From: Entomortierella parvispora E1425
Taxonomy: Eukaryota > Fungi > Mortierellomycota
Assembly: GCA_020891255.1 (NCBI GenBank)
Contig: BQFW01000010.1
Span: forward strand, 1-64,000
DNA length: 64,000 nt
Direction: 5' to 3'
The notes below the pieces were generated by a model. It worked only from the letters and a program-made list of their open reading frames with translations, searched no databases and was not told the DNA's origin. Both the position numbers and the translations under genes were made by a program. Position 1 is the stretch's first letter, and each line of letters starts with the position of its first letter. Shown here piece by piece: positions 1 through 16,289 of this stretch.

Positions 1-329
1 GGGCAACAGGGCCAACAGAGGCAACGAGACAAGAGACAAGCGACAGCGGCTGAGACCGACAACAGCTGCCACAAACGAGCCTGATCTGTCCAAGCGGACA
101 ACCTTTTTTTTTGTCGGTAGCCGCTGCAAAGTACGCATCCCAAGATCAGATCACCCCTCCCTCGGAAGTGGATATGTACAACCTGTGGTGAAGCAGGCAG
201 GGCTGAAAGGGAAGGAGAGGAAGAGAGGGAAGAGAGAGGGAAGAGGAGGACAGACAAAATCAGAAGGACTCAGGGGCAATCAGCAGCGGGAGGGAAAAAA
301 GGACAGAGACATGGGCAAGGCCGTCCATA

Positions 330-860
330 TTCTTTCTTCTTCCTCGACCGTTCCATTTCATCTCCTACCTCGCTCTTCCATCTTGCAACCTGCATCCATG
401 CCATACGATTGCCTTATCATCGCTCTTGCGTCATCCATCTTGTCGCCTCCATCTTGTCGCCTCCATCTTGTCGCCTCCCATCTTGTCGCCTCCATCTTGT
501 CATCTTGTCGCCTCCCATCTTTCTCGACTCTTACATCCTCTCCGTCCTTGCATCCATCTCTCTTCTTTCATCGTCCATGTCCATGATGCTCTTCTCTCCT
601 ATTGCATCCACAACTCCCTCCTTCGCATCATCTCTTTGAAGGCTGAGGCGGGAAGGTCAGTGAGAGGGTCTCAAATAAGAAAGTAGATGACTCGATAAGA
701 AAAAGTGAATGGCGCGATGGCGCGAGAGAAAGAGTAGATGGCGCGATAAAAGAGAAAAGTAGATGGCGTGAGGAGAAAAGTAGATATGGCTAGAAAAAAA
801 ATAAATAGATACCGAAAGAGGAGAGAAGCGCAGATGAGTGGCTGCTAGAAGGATAGGATA
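330..860. repeat. Low-complexity repeat tract: (CCTCCATCTTGTCG)-like units at ~435-515 and AGTAGATGGCGCGA-like units at ~680-790
   Basis: Tandem units are directly visible. CTCGACTCTTACATCCT at ~524-540 matches the reverse complement of AGGATGTAAGAGTCGAG at ~16592-16608, so it belongs to the same family as the 16.3-17.0 kb tract. Confidence 0.7.
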
Positions 861-1532
861 CGGGTGAGTCGCGCCAGAGACGAGCGCGTTTTCATGGGTC
901 GCGTCAACATAAAAACCGCGGACAGGGAGGGCCCAGCACAGATTTTTTTACAGGGCCTAGCACAGACTATTTTACTGCCAATTGAAAACTGGTCAATATC
1001 CATTCTTGTCTCGTCCCCACTTCGTTCGAGTGCGTCTCGCCTGTTTACTCGGCGTTTCTATAACACTACCAAAGAGATTATTCTTGCCAAAGCATCCGCA
1101 AAGGAGGCCACAGCACAAGCTGCAAGAATAAAAAAAAAAAAAACAAAAAGTGTATAGGTATATGATATCCAGGATCTACATCGCAAACAACATCCCATTG
1201 CCGGGTTGCCCGGCCATTAGAGCTCTTCTATCGGAACCCTCTTTGTTTCAATGATGGGGTGATCGCGACGAGTTACAACAAGGGCACTTAGTCATGACTT
1301 CATAGGCAAGATGGAAGGGATTTATTCTTTGGACATTCGTCCCATGGCAGAACAAAAGGCGTGAGGGTTGACTTGTATAGTCTACTGTATTAATTGCGTG
1401 AGCAGGGGTCATTGAAGCCTCCATCAACTGAGTAGAGTAGTGTGTTCTCGACCATCCTACCATCCTAAGTGAATAGACAATTTGCAGAGGCCAATCTTTT
1501 GATTTACCTGTATTCAAGAGCTGCCCGACAGT

Positions 1533-1720
1533 GGTGGATGGATAAGATTGATCATGGAGCAACTGATGGGGCGGTGGATGGACAAGGTAGATTATGGAGC
1601 AACTGATGGTGCGGTGGATGGACAAGGTAGATCATGGAGCAATTGATGGGCGGAAGATGGACAAGGTAGATCATGGGGCAACTGATGGGCTGGTGAATGG
1701 ATTAAAGTTAATCAAGATCA
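1533..1720. repeat. 40-bp minisatellite, ~4.5 copies
   Basis: Unit GGTGGATGGACAAGGTAGATCATGGAGCAACTGATGGGGC starts at ~1533, 1573, 1613 and 1652, with a decayed copy at ~1692. Confidence 0.9.
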
Positions 1721-1780
1721 ACCAATGATAGTTCATCGCCAGCTCCCTCTGCTGCTGTCTCGTTCCAGCTTTGTTTGCGG

Positions 1781-2587
1781 TATAAATACATCCAGGTCGC
1801 CTCGATCGCGCCCACGCCCATTCTGCAGTTTCTGACTCAACTCTCTACCTTAAAACCTCCAGCACCATCATCTCTTCCCGAGCTTTCACCTGATTTTCCT
1901 TGATCTGAGTGCCAGTCTGACCCAAAGGCCGCTCTGAATCATATTTTGTCAGGTACGTGATGTGAGATATCTGTTCATCTACCAGCCTGCCTCAGAATTC
2001 TCTCTAACATCAATATTTTCTATCAGACCTGCTGTTGGTTTTCCCTGAGAAAAGTGCCATCTACCTCAAAGACCCTCTCGAAGACCAGATCCTCTCTTTG
2101 ATCTCCAAGTACGTCTACTAAGAGTATCCATCTGTTCTTCTATCTACATGTATCTACCAGCTTCGGAACTAATACTAAAAAAACACTTCTTTATCTTCAA
2201 GTTCGACCTCGATTTTAGTGCTTGGTTCCTCCTTCGCAGAGTACCGGTCTGCCTCAAAGGCCTCCCTTCTGAAGACCAAGGAATCTACCTATTGATCGTC
2301 AGAGGTATGTAACTACAGGGTGCTTCTTCATCTATCTACTTGCTTCTGGACCCTCCCTAAACCAAACTTTTATCCACAGGTTCATGCCGAGCAATTGTTC
2401 TTGAGTAACTGTCCGCTTCAAAAAAACCTTCCCAAACCCCAAAAAAACACGAGATTCCTTCCAACTGTCCAGTATTCCTTGTCGGGTATGCAGCACAAAA
2501 TCAAAATATCAAAAAATAAAAAAAAGGTCGAAAGTCCTGAATACTGACAGATGATCCTTTTCAACAATATAGAGCAAGCCTCTCGCC
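1781..2587 (+). promoter_or_regulatory. TATA box plus non-coding 5' leader with four predicted introns upstream of the retroelement ORF1
   Basis: TATAAATA at 1781. Introns: 1953-2026 (GTACGT..CTAAC..CAG), 2109-2201 or 2218 (GTACGT..CTAAT..AAG/TAG), 2305-2379 (GTATGT..CTAAAC..CAG), 2486-2572 (GTATGC..CTGAC..TAG). ATG in GCCATGG context at 2588. Confidence 0.65.
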
Positions 2588-4978
2588 ATGGCCCCACCTT
2601 TACCTTGGAACGAAAACGTGAATCGACTAGAGGCTGAGGAACTCGTCCAGAGATTTGGCAGACTCTGGCCTACACGCTGTGAGAATGCCGATTGCAATAA
2701 GCGTTTCCCACGGTCCTTCTACAAGGATCAAGTGTGCTCGCAGGGCTCAAACATCCGCCGCTTCCGTTGTGGCGGTTGTAAAAGTACCTTTAAAGTCCAA
2801 AAAATGCTGGAGACTCTGCGTGTCGTTAGTCGTGATCCCGCAAAAGCTGAACGAGTAGTCCGTAGAAATGCGGAAGCGTATAGGAGGGAGGCGACGACAG
2901 GGGTCCTTATTAATGTTGTACACCCTACTACCCACGCTGTATGCTCCGTTGACAATATGGAACTCCCTGCCCCTCAAGATGGGGCCTCTATGGACCATGC
3001 GGAACACCCTGCCACTCAAGATGGAGCCTCTGCGGACCATGCGGTACATCCTGCCACTGAAGATGGGGCCTCTGTGGACCATGCAGAACACCCTGCCACT
3101 CAAGATGGGGCCTCTGCGGATCATAATGGTACCCCATGGCACTTGATCGGTCATAGCCTGCTGTCAGACACCGAATCAGTGCACGAGCTTGACGATTACG
3201 ATTCTGGCACAATGGTGATTTCCTCGACCCCGCTGCAACCTGCTTTGGGTACCCAAATTTCTCGCCTTGGATCTCCCCTGACACAGCAGCACCGGCACTC
3301 CCAGTACCCGCACTGGTCGCCTGACTCTCTGCAGCCCTCTCAGTCAGTTGCCAACAGTCAGTCATCGTTAAGCTTCATCGTTGATGATCAGTCACAAATT
3401 GATCCACAAGCAAGCCAGATGGGCTCCTCATCCCCCACTTTGAGCCTCCACCCCTCACAGTGGACACCGATGTCAGGGGAACTCCGATACAGACTGTAGC
3501 CTTGGCATCTGGATCCACTCTGCCAGCCTTCCAAAGTTCTCCTCTCAGGGCGGGTCAAGAGCTCTCGCACACACACAGTTCCTCTCCCAGGCCATCATCT
3601 GTTGCATTGGGGAAACGTCGTCGCGCGGAGACTCCTGAATCTACTGAGCCAGATTCGCAGAGTTTTCCGCCTGGGGCGGATCAAGAGCTCTCGCGTCAGC
3701 ACATGTCCCCTCCCAGACTATCATCTGCTGCATTGGGAATACGACGCCACGCGGAGGGCTGCATGGAGGAAACTACCTGTCAAAAGGAGCAGCCACAGCG
3801 TACTGAGGGTCAACCTTTATTCCGAGAGCAGGCTGTCGAGCTATTTACAGCCCAATTGGCGCAATTGGAAGCTCGACTCGAAGTCCAACTTGCAACCCAA
3901 CTTCAAGCCGTCATCCAAGCAGAAGTGACAGAGCTCTTCCGTCTGCAACGCGAGTCCAACCAAGCACCACTGACAGCGGAGGCAGACTCCCGGCCACCTG
4001 TCATTCCCGCAACTCGAGTCCAGGCCGGTCTAGCAAAGCCTGTTCGAGTTCGTATCGACTCTGTTCGGCCGCGCCAAGCTCAGCCTGCCTCTCCTCGGTC
4101 CCATTCTGCAGCCAGATCACCGGCAGCAGTTTCTGCTGTTGCCTCGCAGTCCAATTCGCCTGCCAAAGCAAGAACCAAGGCAACAGTTAACGCTGGTGCT
4201 GCTCGCCAAGGTCCTAGTAAGGCTCAGATGGACATTGTCAAGTCCATGAAGCCTCCAAGACCTTTCAGAGCACGCAAAACTGCTGCCGAGGCCGCAAGAC
4301 CAACGATTGCTCCTGTCCGAGTATATTTTTCTGGTGTTCAGTCCGGGCCTCTCAAGGTTTTCAAGGCAAAGTTGCGTGGTTTGAGAATTTGTACCTCACT
4401 GATTTACAACATCTCATTTGTTGGGAAGTCTATGTGCGAATTTTTGGTCGATGCTGCCTACCGAGCCAAGTTCATTGAGTCTATGAAAAGCTTCACTTTC
4501 AGACACTTGCCCAACTATGACCCAGCCGTTCCTCAAGATCCCAATGTCACTGGAAGAGACTGCAGAGCTTCTGAGAGGGGCGTACATTCGCCGCCTTGAA
4601 ACAACGGCTTCAACGACCAACCGCGATTTCGTGCGAGATGATTTCCTGAGCATGCTTGCTGCAGCAGATCCCACAGCTCCCACATCTGCCACAGATCTCC
4701 CTGATCTCTCTGGACCGATGGACACTGGCACTGTTGCCGCGACGGCCTCTGCTTCTTCCGGGCTGGTGGAAACTGATATCCCTCTGACTGGTGCTGCTTC
4801 TGAAGCCGCCTCTGCTGCAATGGATATTGATCCCCCCCTGGCTGCTACTGCAACCGCCTCTGATTCTGAGCTAGTTGACACTCATACGCATCCCGCTGCC
4901 GAAGACACAGCTGGTGCCAGTGCTGACGCTCTAAGCGCTAATGAGGAACCCACACGCCCCGCTTCCTCTCATGAATAA
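2588..4978 (+). pseudogene. LINE ORF1 remnant in three frames (2588-3499, 3460-4599, 4517-4978)
   Basis: Overlapping ORFs joined by two apparent frameshifts (~3490, ~4560). N-terminal C-x4-C...RRFRCGGCKSTF zinc ribbon, coiled-coil-like segment (QLAQLEARLEVQL) and a globular block (VRVYFSGV...NISFVGKSMCEFLV...NYDP). The stop overlaps the ORF2 ATG (ATGAATAA, 4971-4978). Confidence 0.75.
2965..3125 (+). repeat. 42-bp coding tandem repeat inside ORF1, ~4 copies
   Basis: CCCTGCC(A/C)CTCAAGATGGGGCCTCT.. recurs at 2965, 3007, 3049 and 3091 and encodes PATQDGASADHAEH-like 14-mers. Confidence 0.9.
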
Positions 4979-7900
4979 TCAGGTCCTCCGTACTGGTTAC
5001 TTGAACTGCCGCGGTCTTCAGGCAGGTTCATTTGACAGAATCGTTTCTTTCGTTTCTGGCCCATCCCCCCCCTTCGATATCATCTTCTTATCAGAGACAT
5101 GGTATATCTGCCCTGACTATTACAGTCGCCATCCTCTCTTCCTTTGTTCTACGCCCATACCTGGAAGTCGACCAGTTAATGGCCGGCTTTATGGTGGTAT
5201 CATCTGTGTTGTCTCCCACCAACTCAAGCGATCACACTGCACCTTTTCAGTCACTCGGCACTCAATTGACGTGTCCATCTTTGGCACCAACATCCGCGCC
5301 TTATATCTTCCTCCTTCTCTCAAGAACCCCAGCTTCCGTTCAGCTTTGTTCGATCCCGTCGCCCACCTTTCTTCGAGATCTCGTCCAGATATTCTTCTCG
5401 GAGACATCAACACCAAGCTAGGAGAACCAAACCTTCCCCCCCCTATCGGTGAACGTGTCACCATAGTTCAGGAGCTGGTCCATCATTACCATTACAACCG
5501 AGTTTTCCCTCTTCTGTCTACGCCAAGAACCATCATGTATTGGCTCGCTTTCACCCAGACTTCTCTTGGAGGTATGAACGGGTTGACCCCTCAGTATGGA
5601 CAGATACGGACCACAGTCTCATGTCTTGCAAGTTCACGCCTCGTGATATACATGATACTGGCACTACCGACGAGTGTTACCGTATCAGTCTGAAGTACTT
5701 GGAACTAAAAGCAGTTCGTTCTCTCTGCTGTGGTTACTACATGGAACTGGCCAACCAATTCGACAAGTTTATCATGGACACTGTATCGCGCGTACGGCGA
5801 CTCTCTGACGCGCGTTCTTTGGATGGAGTTTCCCTCCAAGACAGACAAGCAGTGGTGGATCATCTTGACGATTGTCTTTCTTCAGCTATCTTGACAGCGG
5901 CTGAAGAAGCATGCGGCTCTTATGTCCCCAGCGTCATTCGTACTACTCCAGACAAGCTCTCTGATTCTTTGTCTTCGGTCCCGAAGATGAATGACGCCAT
6001 CCGTATCTTCAAACGAGCGTGTCGCAGCCAGGTGGTGGCTCTGAAATCTCGGGACCCTACCATCTCTCCAGTGGCAGATGTTGTCTCGCACTACAGGTCT
6101 GTTTTCACTCAGCCCGATCCACGATTCCTACCTGCGGCTCGATCCCCTTACCGTGGCATCTCCTTTGAGCCTGATCCTGGCTTGGACGATATGTTTACGA
6201 AGGATAACATGCAAGCAATCTGGAAGAAATACCCGACCAACGCCTCTGGTGGAGAGGATGGGATCCATGTCCAACTCCTACGAGCACTTCAAGGCACCGA
6301 GCTTCCAGAACACATTGCTGGCCTTTTCAGGATTTGCTGTTTGCTCGGTGTCACGCCATCATCATGGAATGTCTCCGTAATCAATCCTATTCCGAAGACA
6401 GAGGGTGCTACGACCATTGACAAATTCCGGCCAATTTCCCTTACATTGATGATTCGGCGGACCTTCGAAAAGTTCTTTTTGGGACATCTTTTGGAGTCTG
6501 ATGCCTCCAAGCTTCATCACACTCAAGCTGGCTTCCGTAACGGATTTTCAACTTTGACTCATGCATTGGTTGCTGACGACTGTGCTATCCGCGGACAAAA
6601 GTATCGTGTCTTTTACGATTTTGCCCAAGCATATGATACAGTCCCAGTGCCTCTGCTACTTTCAAAGATGAAAACCCGAGAGCATCCGCTCAGATTTTGT
6701 CGCTCGTAGACGCCCTCTTTGTCGGCACATCTACTAAGGTTATCGTCAATGGGAGGCAGACAGAGTCTATTCCCCTGAGCCGAGGCCTGCTCCAAGGCTC
6801 CATCTTGTCTCCTCTATTGTTTGACATCTTTATCGACGACCTGGCTCACAAGCTTAACAAGGATACTCCGGACCCGAAGAAAATACCGCGAGCGCTGTTG
6901 TACGCCGACGATATAACAGCTGGATCCCATGCACTGCACCACTTGCAAGTTACTTCCAATGACTTGGTCGACTGGTGCCACGAGAACGGTATGACGATCA
7001 ATCTCGCTAAATGCGGGGTGGTTGGTCTGACCCATGGTGATCGTGACTTGGTCCTTCGCGGTATTGGCCCAATCCCTCGGGTTGAATGCTACAACTACCT
7101 TGGATTCCCATACAAATCCAGAGGGATCGACTGGGCTGAACACTTGAAATCCATGGCTTTAAAAGCATCAAAGACTCTGAAGTTCTGCGAAGCCAGGGGT
7201 AATTCCAAGTGGTCTGCAGGTCTACGGCTAGCTTTGTATCGCGCGTTTGTCCGCTCTAGAATGGAATATGGTGCAGGCATCATGTACCACTGGATCCAGA
7301 ATGACAGCAAGTCTAGGACAGAGCACTTGAAGGCTATAGCGACAGTCCAAGACGCGGCCCTGAAATGGATTTTGGAGTTCAAGGACCCTACAAAGGTTAC
7401 TCACTCATTTCTTGCCTTGCCAACTATCTACGTGCGATTCTCCGACTTGGCCTGCCTCCTTACGGACCACTTTATTGGAATGGATGGGAACAACCCAGCA
7501 AGAACCCTCCGTGATGTCCTCTTCGGCAATGTTGGCCGAAATAAGGACCGGATTCTTCCAAAGTGCCACAAGCACCCGGACCGCCTGTTGTATCAAAATT
7601 ATCTGGCAAGACTTAGAAGAGAAGAAAAAGTCGATTCATTGAAGGTCTGGCTGCGGAAGAGGTTCCTTGACGAGTGCTTCCGGACGCTGCGGCTTTGCAA
7701 GTATTTCGAGCCTCAGATGCGCACGAGAGGTATAGGGCCTGTTACCGCCATCTACTTCAAGTCACTCCGCCTACGCAAGAACGCAATTGCTTGGCACCTG
7801 AACAAATTCGCTTGTGGAGCGCGCTGTTCGGAATGCAACAACATTTTTCATCAAACCCATGTTGTCGATTGCGGCTGGCAAGAAAAAGCTCCTTGATCTT

Positions 7901-8071
7901 GCCCCTCCGAAAGTTGTTGCCACCTTCTTGGCTCTGCCCCCGCTTGCACCAAACAAGTGTCGTCCCAACTTCGTCGACTTCCTCCTCAAGGAGAGGCACC
8001 TTGCCTCCTTGGCCGAGGCATTTGGCTGGTTGGAATTCTGGATGCGTCCTCGGGAAAACTACGATGTATAG
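4971..8071 (+). pseudogene. LINE ORF2 (APE endonuclease - reverse transcriptase - Cys/His knuckle), about three frameshifts
   Basis: APE motifs YLNCRGL, IFLSETW, LYLPPS, ILLGDIN, TDH. RT motifs KFRPISLT, QAGFR, FYDFAQAYDTV, GLLQGSILSPLLF, LLYADD, YLG. C-terminal CSEC..HQTHVVDC. Frame switches at ~5530, ~6690 and ~7890. Confidence 0.92.
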
Positions 8072-8199
8072 TCTTGGATGTTGTCTGTCAGTCAGTCAGT
8101 CTTTTTTTTTTTTTTTTTTTTTTTTTTTTGTTCGTGCTCCCTCGCGCCAGAAAAAAAATAAAATAAAAAAATTGACTACAATTGCTGCCACCCTGCTCA

Positions 8200-11100
8200 G
8201 ATCGTTGCTGCCCCATGTCTTCTCTCCTAGTAAGTGTTGATCATTACGAAAGAAGATATCTCATTCTAACGACCTCCATGGTCTTTATTGTCCATATTGT
8301 CCAGCAATTAGTCCATCCAGTTGATGACATCTGCTCCTTTTTGCCCGTGTCCTCACACTTCTCGTATTCGCTCCCTTGGTAAGCATCTGCTCTTCACGCC
8401 TACAATACCCCTTTCAATGGAAGAGAGATAGAAAGAAAGAGCAATCGTTCTAACCATTTCAACTGCTTTGTCCATAGAGTTAAGAATGTCAATGGTATAT
8501 ATCTCCTCGGTCCTTTGAATCCTTGCTGTCAATTCAAGCGGCTGTCTCCTTTTCGCCTACTCTGCTCCCTGCTTCCGTGGCGGCGCCTTGCGGCCTTGAC
8601 ATGATCTGAACTGACAGGGGTTCTGGGGTCGAGACTGGGCCTCTTTTTTTTTTTTTTTTTTTTTTTGCTCCAAAAAAAAAAACATTCAGCTCTCCAAGCT
8701 GCAGATGGCGGCTGTTCCTGCCCGGTTGTTATATCTGCTCTAGTTTCAGTAAGTGCAGCCTACAATTCATACATTCGATGTTCCCTACTGAGGAAGATAA
8801 ACGGAGAAAGTATTTCAACTGACGGCTTTAGTTGATTTTATATCCTACGTAGTCTGACCCAGCGTCTGGTCTTCGGTCCTCCATTCAGGTGAGATGTTTC
8901 CATTCTTCCGCCTCTTCCTTGCAGACCGTTGCCACATTGTCATTGTGATTGCTCCTACCATGTCAAAGGCGCCCTTTTCTGGTCTTCTCTCCGGACTTCC
9001 ATCCTGGCCAATTGGTCTTTTTCAGCCCACTCATACCTGCTTACTCCTCTTGTAGCGGCAACTTGCGGTCTTGACTCAACTTTACGGTTTCCTGGGAGTA
9101 GACGTCGTAATTTCATCATGGCATGGACCACAGGAGCTTTGTTACATGGTTTGGACACATCCTTTCTGTCTTGCTTCCATGTCTATTCCCTGCGGTGAGT
9201 GAAGTTGGCTTGTATGGAAGAGAGATAAAGAAAACTTATTCTAACGCCCCCTCTTGTTTCATCGTCCATGTAGTCGGGCATGTTGACAGCGTCTGCTCGC
9301 CTCGGCTCTAGCCAGTTCCATGTTCCTTGCGATCATTGCCCTAAGTTTTTGACTGACCGGAACTCTGGATCGGGCGCTGGTTCTTTTTGATGGCGAGGTC
9401 CGTCTCCGCTCAAAAAAGAAAGGAGGGGCAGCCGTCACAGTTCTGTTGTCCCATGTCTGGTCCGGTCCATGTCTTCCGCTGAATCGTTGAATACCAACTT
9501 TATGCTGGCCAGAAATCCCTCCTGCCCCTGTCGGGTCGGGGCACCAAGGGGATGAAACCACATTCACGATTCGCATGCGTGAGTCCTGGATCTGGGTTAA
9601 GGTCTGCCCTCGTTGTCGTCTATGGCTGCTTCCTGGAGTCCTTCAGTCGAAATGCCTATCGTTGCCTGTCGACTCCATGCTGGCTCTTTCAATCAAGCTG
9701 TTGCATGTGTCATTACATGTCATCTCCAAGCCGCTCTTTCGATGAGGTTGATCTGCCCACCTTTGAAGAACCTCTCCTACTACTCCGAGGACTGGGTGTT
9801 CAAAGGCTGAACCCAAAGCCCGCCCATATGGGTCTTGAGTTTTTGGCATGAAAGACTGGCATTGTTCCTGCTGCTCCGCGGTCTCGACTCAAGTTTCTGG
9901 TTTTCTGAAGCGCTGGGAGCTACATCTTGGGTCTGTTTCGTGAACCATATTCGCAAAAAAGAAACAAACTGGCTGTATCCTGCCGTTCCTACCGTTCCTG
10001 CAGTCCTGGAAGTTGCATCCGTTCGTATGGTAAGTTTTTTGGGGCGTGTCGTTGAAAAGAGACAAAGACGGATGGGCAGCTCCAACGAGGACGAGAATCG
10101 AGTACGAGATGGTTGACGCACGTGATGTGCCTTTTTTTCGTTTTTTTTTTTTTTTTTTTTTGTCCGCAGCCAAGCATGTTCAGGAAGACAGGGTATCCTC
10201 AGCCTCAGACCTCACAGCACTGGTCTAGTCGACAGGAGTTCGGAGGAGGGGTCCTTGATTGTGTGGTTCGTTGCCCGCTTAGAAAAAAAGAGTTCCTGGC
10301 CTGCTTTGTTGCAAATCCCACTTGTTCAATCCGCTTCTATGGTAAGTGTTGTTCCTCACGCGTTTGAAAGCCTCTCGTGCAAAAAGACAAATGGAGGGAC
10401 AATCGTTCTAACCCTTCCCATGTTGTCGATATAATCAAGCAGGCTACTTATCTTTGTTCACACCGCCGTTTTATTCGCTCCTTTGGTAAGTGTCTGCCAC
10501 GCCTGTGATACTGTGATATCCCTTTCGAGGGATAGAAAAAAAAAAAGCAATCGTTCTAACGACTTTAGCTGATTTTATTGTCGATATAGTCAAGAGCGTC
10601 AACGGTATCCATTCTCCTCGATCCTTGAGCTCCTTGCCGTCAATCCAAGTGGGCTGATTCTTTTTCGCCTACTACGATTCCTGCTTTAGAGACGGCGCCT
10701 AGTGGCTTTTGCATGAGTCCTAGACAAACTCGCACACTTGACTAGGTGTGGTCTGATTCCACGCAAAATAGCAAGAGGAGAGGGCCGTTGCTGGGTCGTC
10801 GTCGATAAGTTCGTTCCAGTATTCCTTGGGGTCGAGCCGTTGAATATTGCCTCCGTGATGATTTCTCAGTCAAGTTTATCACCCTCATCGATACCAAGGC
10901 GATGAAGGGTGAATCCATCACCCAATCGGTACTCAAGAATCCTGGATCTCCGTTGAGAATTGCTACCGTTGTCGCCTGTGGCCGCTTCCTGGAGTCTTTC
11001 GGTCGAACTGATGCCTGTCGTTACCTGTCAACCACATGTTGGCCCACTCAGTCACATTGTTGCCTGTCGCTGCCTGTCAACTCCATGCTGGTCTGCTTAG

Positions 11101-11650
11101 TCAAGTTGTTGCCAGGCGTTGCTTGTCGACTCCTGCCTGGTCTATTCAGTCAAGTTGCTGCATGTGACATACATGTCATCATCATGCTGTCCATCCAGCC
11201 AAGCTGGATTGCCCTCCTTTGACCCTCCGCTCCTGCTCCTTCCGAGGACCGGATGTCAGAAGGATGAGCCCATAACCTGCACCTGTGGGTCTTGAGGTTT
11301 TGCATGAAAACCTGCGTTGTCCTGCTTCTGCACGGTCTCGATTCAAGTTTCTGGTTTTCTAAAACGCCGGAGCCATGCCTCGAGTCTAGTACTTTTTTGT
11401 TGCATGGGTCCACATTCGCACAGAAGACATAGACTGGTTGCACCCTGCTGTCCTTGCTGTCCTGGATGTTGCATCCGTTCGTACGGTAAGTTTGAGAAGA
11501 GTATCTTTTGAAGAACGGGGAAAGAGTGATTTCTCAGAGCCGCAAAGGCAAAAAGAAAGAAAAGTGCTGCGAAAAGTCACGGACAGCGGAAAGGGAAAAA
11601 AAAACGAAATGCATTCTAACGTGGTCTCTTCTTGCTGTTGCCAACCTAGC
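8200..11650 (+). repeat. Decayed, internally duplicated exon-intron modules (non-coding or pseudogenic)
   Basis: 8367-8600 resembles 10473-10715, and 9610-10035 resembles 10967-11495. GCGGTCT(T/C)GA(C/T)TCAA recurs at ~9065, 9878 and 11332. Repeated GTAAG...TTCTAAC...AG introns; no long ORF. Confidence 0.65.
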
Positions 11651-11720
11651 CAGTGACCTTGACCTTGGTTCTGAGTCGACTGAAGTTTCGGATCAGGTCG
11701 AGGTCGGGGGTTTTCTTCTT

Positions 11721-12062
11721 GGTCCTGGCCCTCTTCCTGGTCCTGGCCCTCTTCCTGGTCCTGGCCCTCTTCCTGGTCCTGGCCCTCTTCCTGGTCCTGG
11801 CCCTCTTCCTAGTCCTGGCCCTCTTCCTATTCCTGGCCCTCTTCTTGGTCCTGGCCCTCTTCCTGGTCCTGGCCCTCTTCTTGGTCCTGGCCCTCTTCCT
11901 GGTCCTGGCCCTCTTCCTGGTCCTGGCCCTCTTCCTGGTCCTGGCCCTCTTCCTGGTCCTGGCCCTCTTCCTGGTCCTGGCCCTCTTCCTGGTCCTGGCC
12001 ATCTTCTTGGTCCTGGCCCTCTTCCTAGTCCTGGCCCTCTTCTTGGTCCTGGCTCTTCCTAG
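11721..12062. repeat. 18-bp minisatellite (GGTCCTGGCCCTCTTCCT)n, ~19 copies
   Basis: Directly visible near-perfect array that reads (GPGPLP)n on + and (RKRART)n on -. Confidence 0.97.
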
Positions 12063-12487
12063 CCCTGGTCCTCCTCTTGGCTCATTATTCTTGGCCAAAC
12101 CCTCCTGACTGGATCTGACAATGGACGGACTTTTCGCTTCCCTGCATAGTTGCTATTCACTTCTGTCCTGCGGGCTTGATCTTTTTTTTTTTTTTTTTGC
12201 GGAAACAAAAAAAAAGCTTCACTCCAGCGTGTTGTTCTGTCCACTTCTGCAGTAGGTGTTGCTTCTCAAGCGCTTGGTGTTGCTCTCTTCTTGGAAAAAG
12301 AATCCATGCTGATGTCCTTTTTGTTTTCTTGTTCACATAGACCACAGCCAGCCGGGCTTCTCGCTTCAGTGGTCTTTTTGGTTGGGCCTTCTCTCCCTTT
12401 GGAGACTGAGCTAGGAGGTCGATCTTGGTCTTTGCCTCTATTTGCTCTAGTTGTCACTGGTTGGCGCTCCATTCAATTATGACCATC

Positions 12488-13330
12488 ATGTCACTGCATG
12501 TCGATTCCCTGTGGCCAAGTTGTTGATCTCGGCGCGGATCTTCCCCCCTGGCCGGCCCCCACCCACTCCCCCCGAGGGACTGGGGGCCAGGGGGGTTTTC
12601 TCCACCTGCCCATCCCTTTTGTGTGAGGGATGGGAGTTGGGATTGGGGGCTGATTCTGCAGCAGCAGCATCTGTGCTATTGCCCCAGATGTCACCGATGG
12701 ACGCTTCCTGCGCGCCATCCACTCAAGCCCGTCGCATGTCGCTGCATGCTGATTCCCTTCAGCCAAGTTGTTGATCTCGGCGCGGATCCTCCCCCTCTGG
12801 CCGGCTCCTGCCCACTCCCCCCCGAGGGACTGGGGGCCAGGGGGTTTTCTCCCCACTTGCCCATCCCTTTTGTGTGAGGGATGGGAGTTGGGACTGGGAG
12901 CTGATTCTGCTGCAGCAGCCTCTATTGCTGTTGCCCCAGATATCACCGATGGACGCTTCCTGCGCGCCATCCACTCAAGCCCGTCGCATGTCGCTGCATG
13001 CTGATTCCCTTCGGTCAAGTTGTTGATCTCGACGTGGATCTTCCCCCCTGGCCGGACTCGCCACCCCACTCCCTTCTGAGGGAATGGAGTCCAGGAGGGG
13101 GGTTCTTTTCTCTTCTCTCCCCACTTGCTCATCTTCCTCACCTGTGAGAAATGAGATTTGGGGCTGACTCTGCTGCTGCTGCCCTCTGCCGCGGCTGCCC
13201 CAGATGCCACCGATGGACGCTCCCTGCGGTCCATCCTTCAAGCCCATGCAGACTGACTGCTCCAAGTTGGTCTGTTTTGCCCCCCCTCTGGCCGGCTTCC
13301 TCCCACTTCCCCCGGGGACTGGGGGCCAGA
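12488..13330. repeat. ~250-bp GC-rich tandem repeat, ~3 copies
   Basis: ACTCAAGCCCGTCGCATGTCGCTGCATGCTGATTCCCTTC at 12721 and 12973 (period 252). Related unit starts at 12488; the third copy is diverged. Many C5-6 and G5-6 tracts. Confidence 0.9.
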
Positions 13331-13925
13331 GGAGGTTTTAGCAGCCCTATCCATAGCCCACTCGTGAGCCGTGGCAATGGGGCTCGGGAGGCCACTCGCC
13401 ATCAGCTATCCCATTAGCTTGCACTTGCAGCTTCTTCTTGCGCCTTTCTGCTCACCGTTGCCGTTCAAGACTCTGCCAGCTTGCGCATCCCAGCTCGCCC
13501 ATGCGAGCGCGCAAGCAAGAGACTCCCCATTCCCCGCTCACCCCTACTTGGGGTGACATGGGCGGGCTTTCCTCCCATGCAGGCAGACAAGACAAGACAA
13601 GGACACCCTACTTTCCCCACCTTGCACCCTAACTTGGGTGCCCTGGGCATGGCTCACCCCAATCTGGGGTGTCCCCAGCGTAGGGTCTCCCCATTGCAGG
13701 GTTTCCCCATTGTAGGGTTTCTTCACCCTAAAGTCCGTCCACCCAGTCTCCCCCCAGAGACCCCAACTTTCCCCTGACCCCCACTCAGGGGGTCATTTGG
13801 GTGTGACCAAGAGACCAAGAGTTGGAGAATGCCCTCATGCATCTTGTCAGGGTCGTGGATGCATGCGATTGGTCCGATCGGGTTCCATCGATCACGCCAT
13901 CGTCAGGGTGGATTGAGATGGTAAG

Positions 13926-14880
13926 ATGGAGCAAGATGGAAAAGATGAAAGAGATGCCCAACCTAATTTGGACCTCTTTCTCTTCTCTCCATTCTCTCCA
14001 TTCCTCCATTCACCCACCCACCCCCACCAACAACAGCACTCCCACCATGAACCGCCACGCTGCCCCCAGCACTCCCCAGTGAGCTTCAAGACAGTTGTCC
14101 AAACCCCCAAGAAGGTCACCATCGACGACTTTGTTGGCGAGAATGGCCTGGTTCCCTTAACACAGGCCCACAGCCACCTTAAGGGCTCCATGATGAGTCC
14201 TAGACCCATGAACCTCCGCCCCCGCCAGAGGCAGTGGCCTCCCCTACCCACACCGTCTTCGGCGGGTCCGATGACGAGGGGCAGGGGAGCGAGGACTCAA
14301 GGAGGACAACCACCAAGATGACGACGCCGAGATAACGGACCCTCCCTCGGGACAGGGAGGACGAGACGGGGCAAGGCCATCACGTTGCTGACACCACGTA
14401 CGTGGCTGATGCGGACGATGAGGCTACCCAACCATTGCCGGCGCTCGAGCAAGAACAAGACCTGTTGGAGATGGTGCCACAGAGCCCGCTGGAGACAATG
14501 GGGGTGGACTCCCCCCCTGTCACAGGCAGCGACTGGCACTGTCGACCAGGCGCCCGTGGTTGACGTTCACCAACCACAAGACGCCCCAACCCCTATGCAT
14601 CCGAGGCAATATACCCAGGCCCTGGAGACCTTCGTTCAGACTCTCCAAAGGCGCTTCGAGTATGTCGAAGCGCGCCTCAGATACACGAGCAAGCCCAAGT
14701 AGGCGAACATTCGGCGATGCAAGGCTTGGATGACCTGGAGGACCAGTTCATGGATTTGAGTGATCAGATCTCTCATCACCTCTTCCGCCTCAGGCCACAG
14801 GCCCATCCCAAGCCCAAGCGTGCCCACTCCCGCCCCAAACCATACCACTCCCGCCCCGCCTCCAGGCGTGGCCCCAGATA
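13926..14880 (+). pseudogene. Possible decayed ORF of unknown type
   Basis: Successive ORF pieces interrupted by stops, with a coiled-coil-like stretch (ALETFVQTLQRRFEYVEARL...LDDLEDQFMDLSDQI). No family recognised. Confidence 0.25.
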
Positions 14881-14936
14881 ACCCCGTAAACCATCAAGCA
14901 TTGAGCCGACTGGCATACCCCATTAAAGAATTAAAA

Positions 14937-15005
14937 CCTAAAAAAACCCTAAAAAACCCTAAAAAACCCCTAAAAAACCCTAAAAAAACCCTAAAAACCC
15001 TAAAC
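14937..15005. repeat. Interstitial telomere-like array (AAAAAACCCT)n, ~6 units
   Basis: CCCT units separated by A5-7, followed by TTTTTAGGGTTT and CCCTAAAC at 15010-15034. Confidence 0.8.
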
Positions 15006-16289
15006 CTTATTTTTAGGGTTTATTCGCCCTAAACTCGCATATTTGAACTGTTTAACAACGTTCTGGAGCGTCTGTGCATCGTTTGCGCCATTCAGATCGA
15101 CCGTGAGATACGTTTTTCTGTTATTTCCTAAAAAGGAAATGTGTAGATTTTTGGTGGCTTAGACTTTCTGGATCATTAGGTATTCCTTTTGTTTACTTTT
15201 GCTCCCGGGTTCGAATTCGGCTTTGGCCTCGCTTTTCTTGAATATATAAAAACAAGGTGTTTTTTTTCCTTCGTAGAGATATAAGATACGGTGCATTAGA
15301 GAGCTCTCCTCATAAGTATTCCACCAAGCTAATAAAATCGTCAATCCATAAGGTGGATCTTGAGCAATTGCATTTTTTAATCTGGTTTTTTATGAAAATC
15401 GAACGCTTACTCCTTGATATCTACGTTGACGACTAAGGTGATTTTCATATGGGGAGGTGCCTATTCATCAGAGGTCTTCATTCATGAAGAAAAACTGGCG
15501 AGTGACAAGGAGGTTGATGTGTAATTGCTGTTCTTAGAGTTCATTTTTTTTTGAAAAAAAATTCTCTCTTAAGATGGAGGAGTGAAGTGGTGACAGGAGC
15601 CGAGAGCGAGCCACTTACAACACTTTGTAGTTGGATTTCATAAAGAAAGGCGATACGAGAACGGGTAAGAGCAAAGTCTGCACTTTTGGGTGAGAGAACC
15701 ACTGTTGGGCGCTTAAAAGGACAATCCAGTAGCAACAGGAGATCGAGTGTGAACCGTACACATGCTTGCCCTCTCTTGAGTTCAGCAAGGAACTTCTAGC
15801 TCTCTCAAACAGTTTTCAGTCTCCTCATCGTGCATGCAGACAAGAACATCAGCTTGTGCAGTTGTCATTTAGTTTTTTTATTAAAAGTAGGAAAAAGATG
15901 GCAGAGACGTGGGAGCAAAACATACGAGACAGCGGTGACTTTGCCCTGGATCCTCGCTACTGCATGCTCTGCCTGAGAGCCAGAGAAATCTAGCAGTTGA
16001 TGGTGGAGAGGACTTACCTGAGAAGTGCGCGCCCCTGAATTAAGGACTTCATGTTTCCTGCATGCCTCCCGTTTGCCGCATGTCCACTCTGGTTCATGGC
16101 TAAGTGGAATGAGCCTTCTCCGTATGGTTAGATCTAAAAGTTGTGGTTGACGACAAAGGGAAGGAATAGCGAGTAACGCGTGAGAAAGGAAGGAGAAAGT
16201 GAGAGGAAACACTCAAGCTTGCGAAAACACGAAGAGAAGAGTGCGAAAACACGAAGAGAAGAGAGCGAAAACAAAGACAGGGGCACAAA

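Follow-up and report, generated by a model that had tools for sequence, protein, structure and literature searches.

The DNA analyzed here (the window) is the first 64,000 nucleotides of a 1,814,996 bp contig (C10) of the soil fungus Entomortierella parvispora. Close to the contig start, a LINE sits inside a 13.5 kb unit (1481–14936), all of whose features lie on the plus strand: a promoter-like 5′ region, a leader made of tandem units, the two LINE open reading frames, a long trailer and a short 3′ terminal motif that abuts an interstitial tract of telomere repeats. The flank outside the unit (284–1480) is an ordinary subtelomeric repeat; C15 carries two paralogues of it and C6 another, all about 85% identical. 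These paralogues all stop aligning exactly at 1480 and then diverge in different ways, whereas the sequence from 1481 onward (promoter region, leader and trailer) occurs within the assembly only in the terminal blocks described below.

The unit-specific 5′ region (1481–1795) has the appearance of a promoter. It contains 4.3 copies of a 40-nt tandem repeat (1533–1701), a CCAAT element (1722–1726) and a TATA box, TATAAATA, read directly in the window at 1781–1788; a CAG/GT motif, CAGGTCGC (1793–1800), lies just 3′ of the box. ATG triplets are numerous in this region by eye, for example within the 40-nt repeats. The leader proper (1796–2587) consists of five tandem units of ∼150–195 nt that start at 1796, 1953, 2109, 2305 and 2486 (units 0–4). 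A repeat search returned six families of direct repeats, five of which (D2–D6) fall in the leader with a spacing of 145–332 nt, and units 0–3 align in register. Units 1–4 each open with GTAYGY, and conservation between units is best in the exon-like parts.

Four intron-like segments of 74–93 nt lie between the TATA box and ORF1: 1953–2026 (74 nt, GTACGT..CTAAC..CAG), 2109–2201 (93 nt, GTACGT..CTAAT..AAG), 2305–2379 (75 nt, GTATGT..CTAAA..CAG) and 2486–2572 (87 nt, GTATGC..CTGAC..TAG). ORF1 begins with an ATG at 2588, in the context GCCATGG and 15 nt beyond the last acceptor. The original prediction had listed the TATA box at 1781, the four segments with fungal splice signals, this ORF1 start, the mutual similarity of the exon–intron cassettes and the LINE nature of the downstream element; each of these points was borne out at the positions given here. 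All four segments have a T-rich tract and end in YAG or AAG. A strict CTRAY branch motif is present in three, 19–29 nt before the acceptor; the candidate branch site of segment 3 (CTAAA) departs from the consensus and the acceptor of segment 2 is AAG. When donor, branch site and acceptor must all fit a strict pattern, only two of the four segments qualify. Since the units are homologous (clearly so for units 1–3), the four segments are not independent observations, and the intron-like part of unit 4 hardly aligns with those of the other units. The GC content of the intron-like parts is 30–43%, against 44–50% in the exon-like parts. A single ATG occurs in the latter, where 4.8 are expected (P = 0.03), and five occur in the intron-like parts; the sole exon-like ATG opens a 6-codon uORF at 2384. 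In length and donor type the segments resemble likely gene introns elsewhere in the window. Searches with the leader used both the whole region and the individual segments as references, and no processed or LINE-free copy of it was found in the assembly at the DNA level. A reading of the cassettes as a snoRNA host gene was unsupported, as positions 1–16000 of the window gave no match to snoRNAs, ribozymes or other Rfam families.

ORF1 (2588–4978) specifies an N-terminal Cys motif, a coiled coil and a conserved C-terminal domain. ORF2 (4971–8071), whose start overlaps the ORF1 stop through ATGAATAA, specifies an APE endonuclease and a reverse transcriptase and is colinear with an intact relative. 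Two pieces of the window ORF2 matched RVT_1 (E values of 6e-9 and 1.6e-16), as did the intact relative (5e-30), and the best PDB match was human L1 ORF2p (2e-18). The Pfam match to Exo_endo_phos was weak (E value of 0.002) and below the cut-off. The APE motifs YLNCRGL, SETW and GDINT are invariant in nine sequences, and STDHKLM is conserved (with TDH invariant) in the eight sequences that reach that far. Judged by its reverse transcriptase and these APE motifs, the element is an APE-type non-LTR retrotransposon. No GIY-YIG domain was found, and the reverse transcriptase is of the LINE type and not of the PLE type. No LINE coding remnants were detected in the trailer or the rest of the window. 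ORF1 matches the annotated gene model EMPS_07226 on the same contig. Neither this model nor EMPS_10680 is colinear with the LINE frames; their DNA matches skip or overlap at frame breaks. Exact-protein look-ups with the annotated model and with an intact ORF1 returned no match.

The window copy carries five frame breaks, in ORF1 near 3478 and 4552 and in ORF2 near 5506, 6679 and 7883. The first reflects a run of four rather than five G residues and the second an extra G; those near 4552, 6679 and 7883 are seen in the window copy only, and at 5506 two of seven copies have one more C. An internal copy on C15 has an intact ORF1 of 796 aa; it has G5 where four copies have G4, and G5 restores the conserved MSGGTP. 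Throughout 2588–8071 the differences between copies are mostly single-base homopolymer indels, mainly shortened runs. The genome was assembled from nanopore reads with SMARTdenovo, and both Nanopolish and Pilon were used for polishing; a stranded RNA-seq set, DRA013164, accompanies the genome (PMC8759367). Because most breaks are single-base homopolymer indels in a nanopore assembly, three are private to the window copy and ORF1 is intact in one copy, the breaks for the most part probably represent assembly error, and we rejected the reading of the LINE as a decayed pseudogene on the same grounds. Subtelomeric repeats are poorly polished in this assembly.

A trailer of 6.8 kb (8072–14904) separates the ORF2 stop from the family 3′ terminus and is found only in these units. 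It contains at least eight intron-like segments (8230–8304, 8379–8477, 8749–8831, 9195–9273, ∼10030–10169, 10342–10442, 10486–10568 and ∼11486–11649) with very canonical signals (GTAAGT..TTCTAAC..YAG), and its longer exon-like parts are closed in all frames. Further along are an 18-nt array of 20 copies (11714–12073), which would read as Pro/Gly-rich in several frames, and 2.4 copies of a 252-nt repeat (12487–13100), and ∼2 kb of the trailer is internally duplicated. Long T runs followed by A runs within 10–25 nt recur (8102–8170, 8644–8690 and 12183–12225; e.g., T28..A8TA4TA7). At 11345–11652 the window lacks ∼1.5 kb that is present in other copies (C15:10703–12210) and includes a second 18-nt array. 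Comparison of the leader with the trailer revealed no similarity. The portion from 8072 to 12400 resembles either a non-coding trailer with several introns or a distinct lncRNA within the unit; it would be unusual for an mRNA that is translated efficiently to carry 6.8 kb of intron-rich trailer behind its ORF2 stop.

The 3′ end of the unit is a 32-nt terminal motif (14905–14936; GCCGACTGGCATA...ATTAAAGAATTAAAA) that aligns with the 3′ ends of related elements. A search of the window for its core pattern gave one occurrence, where 0.08 would be expected by chance, a comparison to be read with the knowledge that the pattern was chosen after seeing the data. Immediately downstream is an interstitial telomere tract (14937–15007) of CCTAAAAAAA followed by CCCTAAAAAA-type units, about seven in all; in different copies the tract has two to nine units. 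The telomere repeat of E. parvispora is the 10-nt sequence CCCTAAAAAA/TTTTTTAGGG. In about 17 contigs, repeats of the CCCTAAAAAA type reach the contig end or come to within ∼200 nt of it, on the plus strand at contig starts and on the minus strand at contig ends (position relative to the contig end was checked for C1 and C15). This terminal placement in the right orientation, together with the absence of TTAGGG arrays from the assembly, identifies TTTTTTAGGG as the telomere repeat; for the same lack of arrays, a canonical TTAGGG telomere was rejected. Repeats of the E. parvispora type also flank related LINEs in other Mortierellaceae contigs. In the E. parvispora unit and in the seven 3′ ends of relatives that were read, the junction has the form ...TTAAA(G/A) followed directly by CCTAAAAAA(A)CCC, in the orientation expected for target-primed reverse transcription on the G-rich strand. 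Judged by this fixed register and by its confinement to chromosome ends, the LINE is specific for the telomere repeat.

DNA and protein searches of the genome placed copies of the LINE at the starts of C10 (the window), C15, C16, C3 and C1, at the ends of C10 and C11, and at one internal position on C15. The trailer part of the block also occurs at the end of C2 and at the starts of C14 and C6. The unit is thus present at no fewer than ten chromosome ends and at the internal C15 site, and these searches found none outside the terminal blocks. Its orientation is constant, with the 5′ end toward the contig end. A block of no less than 15 kb surrounds every copy and is common to them all. From position 1 to about 14,950 the window is 98–99% identical between ends, and identity falls to 82–92% further in. 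The junction with ordinary subtelomeric DNA at 1480/1481 is common to all four copies that reach the 5′ edge (the window, both C15 copies and C11). The same distal and proximal junctions therefore recur at several ends, with an interstitial telomere tract at the inner edge, as in yeast Y′ elements. We found no 5′-truncated copies with independent flanks and no target-site duplications; every copy has the one context, and the truncations coincide with contig ends. On C15 (1–55000) two units lie 38.9 kb apart. Distal to the inner one are 22 kb of generic subtelomere capped by a nine-unit telomere tract, to which the outer one is attached; this layout suggests repeated end extension.

Related elements were recovered by ORF1 and ORF2 searches from Gryganskiella cystojenkinii, metagenomes and run assemblies and are 48–67% identical in ORF2 comparisons; scans of metagenome contigs by ORF1 alignment found no relative. 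We read eight contigs from these other sources (L036–L043), and the statements that follow apply to the element ends that those contigs hold. The order is consistent: the ORF2 stop is followed by a short 3′ UTR, telomere repeats and the 5′ UTR of the next element. The 3′ UTR is ∼60–300 nt long, often T-rich, and ends in the motif GGGGYCAYCTGRCA..AATAAA..CTTAAAG, after which come CCTAAAAAACCCTAAAAAA and a few variant units. The 5′ UTR is ∼65–300 nt long, and the start and N-terminus of ORF1 are conserved among relatives. L043 holds a complete element of 5,283 nt with telomere repeats on both sides, and elements are stacked head to tail in L036 and L039. The upstream member in L036 (3–860) is an ORF1-only element, in which the C-terminus of ORF1 is followed by a stop, ∼100 nt, the family 3′ motif and telomere repeats. 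The element on which it is stacked belongs to another subfamily and has both ORF1 and ORF2, so that the two may pair a non-autonomous with an autonomous element in the manner of HeT-A and TART. Two copies of a 5′ UTR in L041 (120–135 and 5615–5625) differ by a 9-nt indel, GTAATTTAG, exactly at the CAG/GT motif.

The relatives also bear on the origin of the promoter. Four of them have a TATA-like box, 8–18 nt and then CAG/GTACGC (GTAATT in L041), some 50–65 nt before the ATG; a fifth contig, L040, begins just upstream of the motif. Positions 1781–1800 of the window show the same arrangement, namely TATAAATA, CATC and CAG/GTCGCC. Given its homology to the arrangement in four relatives, the TATA–CAG/GT core is, on this comparison, the family's own and not a host promoter, which contradicts the suggestion that the reverse transcriptase locus had been captured under a host-type promoter. 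What differs is the sequence after the core, where the ∼60 nt of 5′ UTR in relatives are replaced in E. parvispora by ∼790 nt of tandem diverged units. The leader was found in none of the eight contigs of relatives. A search for it in other copies had been proposed as a check on the original prediction, and the outcome was divided: all E. parvispora copies that extend far enough carry the leader, but these are segmental duplicates, and related elements of other species are without it.

How the unit spreads decides whether introns in a retroelement need special explanation. The 5′ junction is the same in all four informative copies, and the 15 kb context is common to every copy, from which we infer that the present copies are DNA-level duplicates and that the unit spreads as DNA; independent reverse transcription would give independent 5′ ends. 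Such spread between ends would proceed, as with yeast Y′, through recombination or through break-induced replication that is primed in telomere repeats, and we propose that the same process accounts for the variable length of the telomere tract. Introns could persist in a retroelement whose unit is now copied as DNA, so that the expectation that they should be lost would no longer pose a paradox. We consider it improbable that the unit still moves through RNA, with a long unspliced transcript serving as the template for reverse transcription at telomeres while spliced RNA is translated. Retention of the family 3′ motif and of the telomere register would fit such movement, as would the variation in tract length. 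The intact ORF1 of one copy fits too, most breaks being homopolymer indels in a nanopore assembly and several, though not all, private to one copy. Penelope-like elements, in work cited by PMC6431247, offer an intron-bearing precedent. Against it stand the shared junction, the host-type DNA upstream of it in all four copies and the lack of any 5′-truncated or processed copy visible in the assembly. In addition, region 1481–1795, with its repeats and TATA box, would be absent from RNA started after the TATA box, which makes self-regeneration through RNA unlikely. The distal ends of the units lie beyond the nanopore contigs, and RNA-made copies (telomere-capped or processed) could exist there. 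The original suggestion that unspliced RNA is reverse-transcribed is accordingly not required, the copies being most simply DNA duplicates. Still less probable, in our estimation, is that the leader (and possibly the trailer too) comes from the host, the LINE having landed in or become fused to either a host promoter or a non-coding host gene that is spliced. Same-strand intron-like segments do occur on both sides of the LINE and the leader is absent from relatives. However, within the assembly neither leader nor trailer is found except in the units, and the homology of both the TATA–CAGGT core and the 3′ end to the termini of relatives means that the whole 13.5 kb lies between termini that belong to the LINE itself. 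Host DNA ends at 1480/1481, upstream of the promoter, and the family attaches 3′ end first to telomere repeats. These last two observations, together with the lack of a LINE-free leader in the assembly, also make the earlier idea of chance insertion behind an unrelated spliced lncRNA unlikely.

Whether the four leader segments are spliced is a separate matter. They have the GT-AG borders, donors and T-rich tracts of spliceosomal introns, with the branch motif in three of four, and their splicing is plausible and somewhat favored, the GC contrast, the scarcity of ATGs in the exon-like parts and the typical lengths and donors lending it indirect support. Pol II would start just 3′ of the TATA box, and removal of the four segments would leave a leader of ∼450 nt with the single 6-codon uORF ahead of the strong GCCATGG start of ORF1. 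The competing account, which we regard as rather unlikely, is that promoter monomers are arrayed in the leader as they are in the 5′ UTR of mouse L1: the units would all be duplicates of the TATA-like/CAG/GTACG start region, the GTAYGY sequences would be start-site motifs that resemble donors, and nothing would be spliced. CAG/GTACGC indeed follows a TATA-like box by 8–18 nt in four relatives, with the same layout at 1781–1800 here, L040 has tandem repeats in a 5′ region, and the 5′ UTRs of LINEs usually turn over rapidly. Tandem units and the start motif are likewise present in the window, but the TATA-like box is clear only in unit 0, weak in unit 1 and missing before the motif in units 2–4. 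Without splicing, the leader would also place six ATGs ahead of ORF1, or two if transcription began in the last unit, whereas the 5′ UTRs of relatives have none in the stretches read. Promoter monomers give no role to the T-rich tracts, the YAG/AAG ends and the three CTRAY motifs that accompany the GTAYGY motifs, with the ends 74–93 nt after each, even in the poorly aligning unit 4, and the lower GC content falls exactly in the intron-like parts. The donor-like motif is likely to have descended from the family CAG/GT motif that adjoins the TATA-like box, and its presence may reflect promoter duplication rather than splicing. Such an origin, in our view, does not settle function, because units 2–4 have no TATA-like box and because of the acceptor features, the GC contrast, the depletion of ATGs and the intron-typical lengths and donors. 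Taken together, we judge the chances slightly better than even that this is a 13.5 kb chromosome-end unit built around a telomere-targeting APE-type LINE, with the leader as its 5′ end, spliced and kept by DNA-level spread.

Several known systems share parts of this organization. Like TRAS1 and SART1 of Bombyx, the element is an APE-type LINE with ORF1, ORF2 and conserved APE catalytic motifs, its 3′ end lies on the telomere repeat in fixed orientation and register, and its copies are found only at chromosome ends. It differs from them in its fungal host and 10-nt telomere repeat, in the head-to-tail stacking of its relatives with only two to six repeat units between them, and in the 13.5 kb form of E. 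parvispora with its intron-like leader and trailer. The stacking at ends seen in relatives, with the 3′ end toward the centromere, is also a feature of HeT-A, TART and TAHRE in Drosophila, as is the combination of an ORF1-only with an ORF1+ORF2 element (L036), and in both systems the survival of the promoter through RNA copying is at issue (PMC5537684). Unlike in Drosophila, telomerase-type repeats cap most ends, and the elements therefore do not replace telomerase. The likeness to yeast Y′ lies in a unit present at a subset of ends and 98–99% identical between them, in an inner boundary formed by an interstitial telomere tract of variable length (with a second copy stacked further out on C15) and in a common distal junction that implies spread by recombination. 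In contrast to Y′, the E. parvispora unit encodes LINE ORF1 and ORF2 and not a helicase, and its retroelement origin is directly visible.

Rotifer Terminons are likewise giant retroelement units attached to telomeres, and intron-bearing Penelope elements set a precedent for introns within retroelements; unlike both, the E. parvispora element has a LINE-type reverse transcriptase and lacks both a GIY-YIG domain and any Rfam ribozyme, the hammerhead included. In Terminons, a conserved terminal fold is followed at the 3′ end by a short stretch of telomere sequence in reverse complement (PMC6431247). Among fungi, the MoTeR elements of Magnaporthe oryzae are non-LTR elements embedded in telomere repeats. 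They have variant telomere-like repeats at their 5′ ends, as do the relatives of the E. parvispora LINE. MoTeRs have a restriction-enzyme-like endonuclease and sit in TTAGGG repeats, whereas the family studied here has an APE domain. The chromosome ends of Magnaporthe have been described (PMC1635262).

A broader reading can be offered tentatively, as a possibility whose chances we put clearly below even. The LINE may be turning into a host-like chromosome-end gene, with its own TATA box, a spliced four-intron leader and an intron-rich non-coding trailer, that is kept near-identical at a third or more of the ends by recombination and not by retrotransposition. It would then be a living intermediate between telomeric retrotransposons (TRAS/SART and HeT-A/TART) on one side and Y′-type subtelomeric repeats on the other, in a fungus whose telomere repeat is 10 nt long.

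In the searchable literature we found no description of a fungal APE-type LINE family that targets telomere repeats, of the 10-nt telomere repeat of Mortierellaceae or a telomeric LINE in this group, or of a 13.5 kb LINE derivative that behaves like yeast Y′. Retroelements are expected to shed introns, and an intron-bearing LINE leader looked paradoxical; copying as DNA would be an ordinary way out. E. parvispora can be cultured, and RNA-seq and nanopore reads (the latter under DRA010776) exist already. If the leader is truly spliced, the unit would be a clear case of a LINE gaining host-gene architecture once free of RNA copying, and a tractable system for how telomeric retroelements become subtelomeric repeats.
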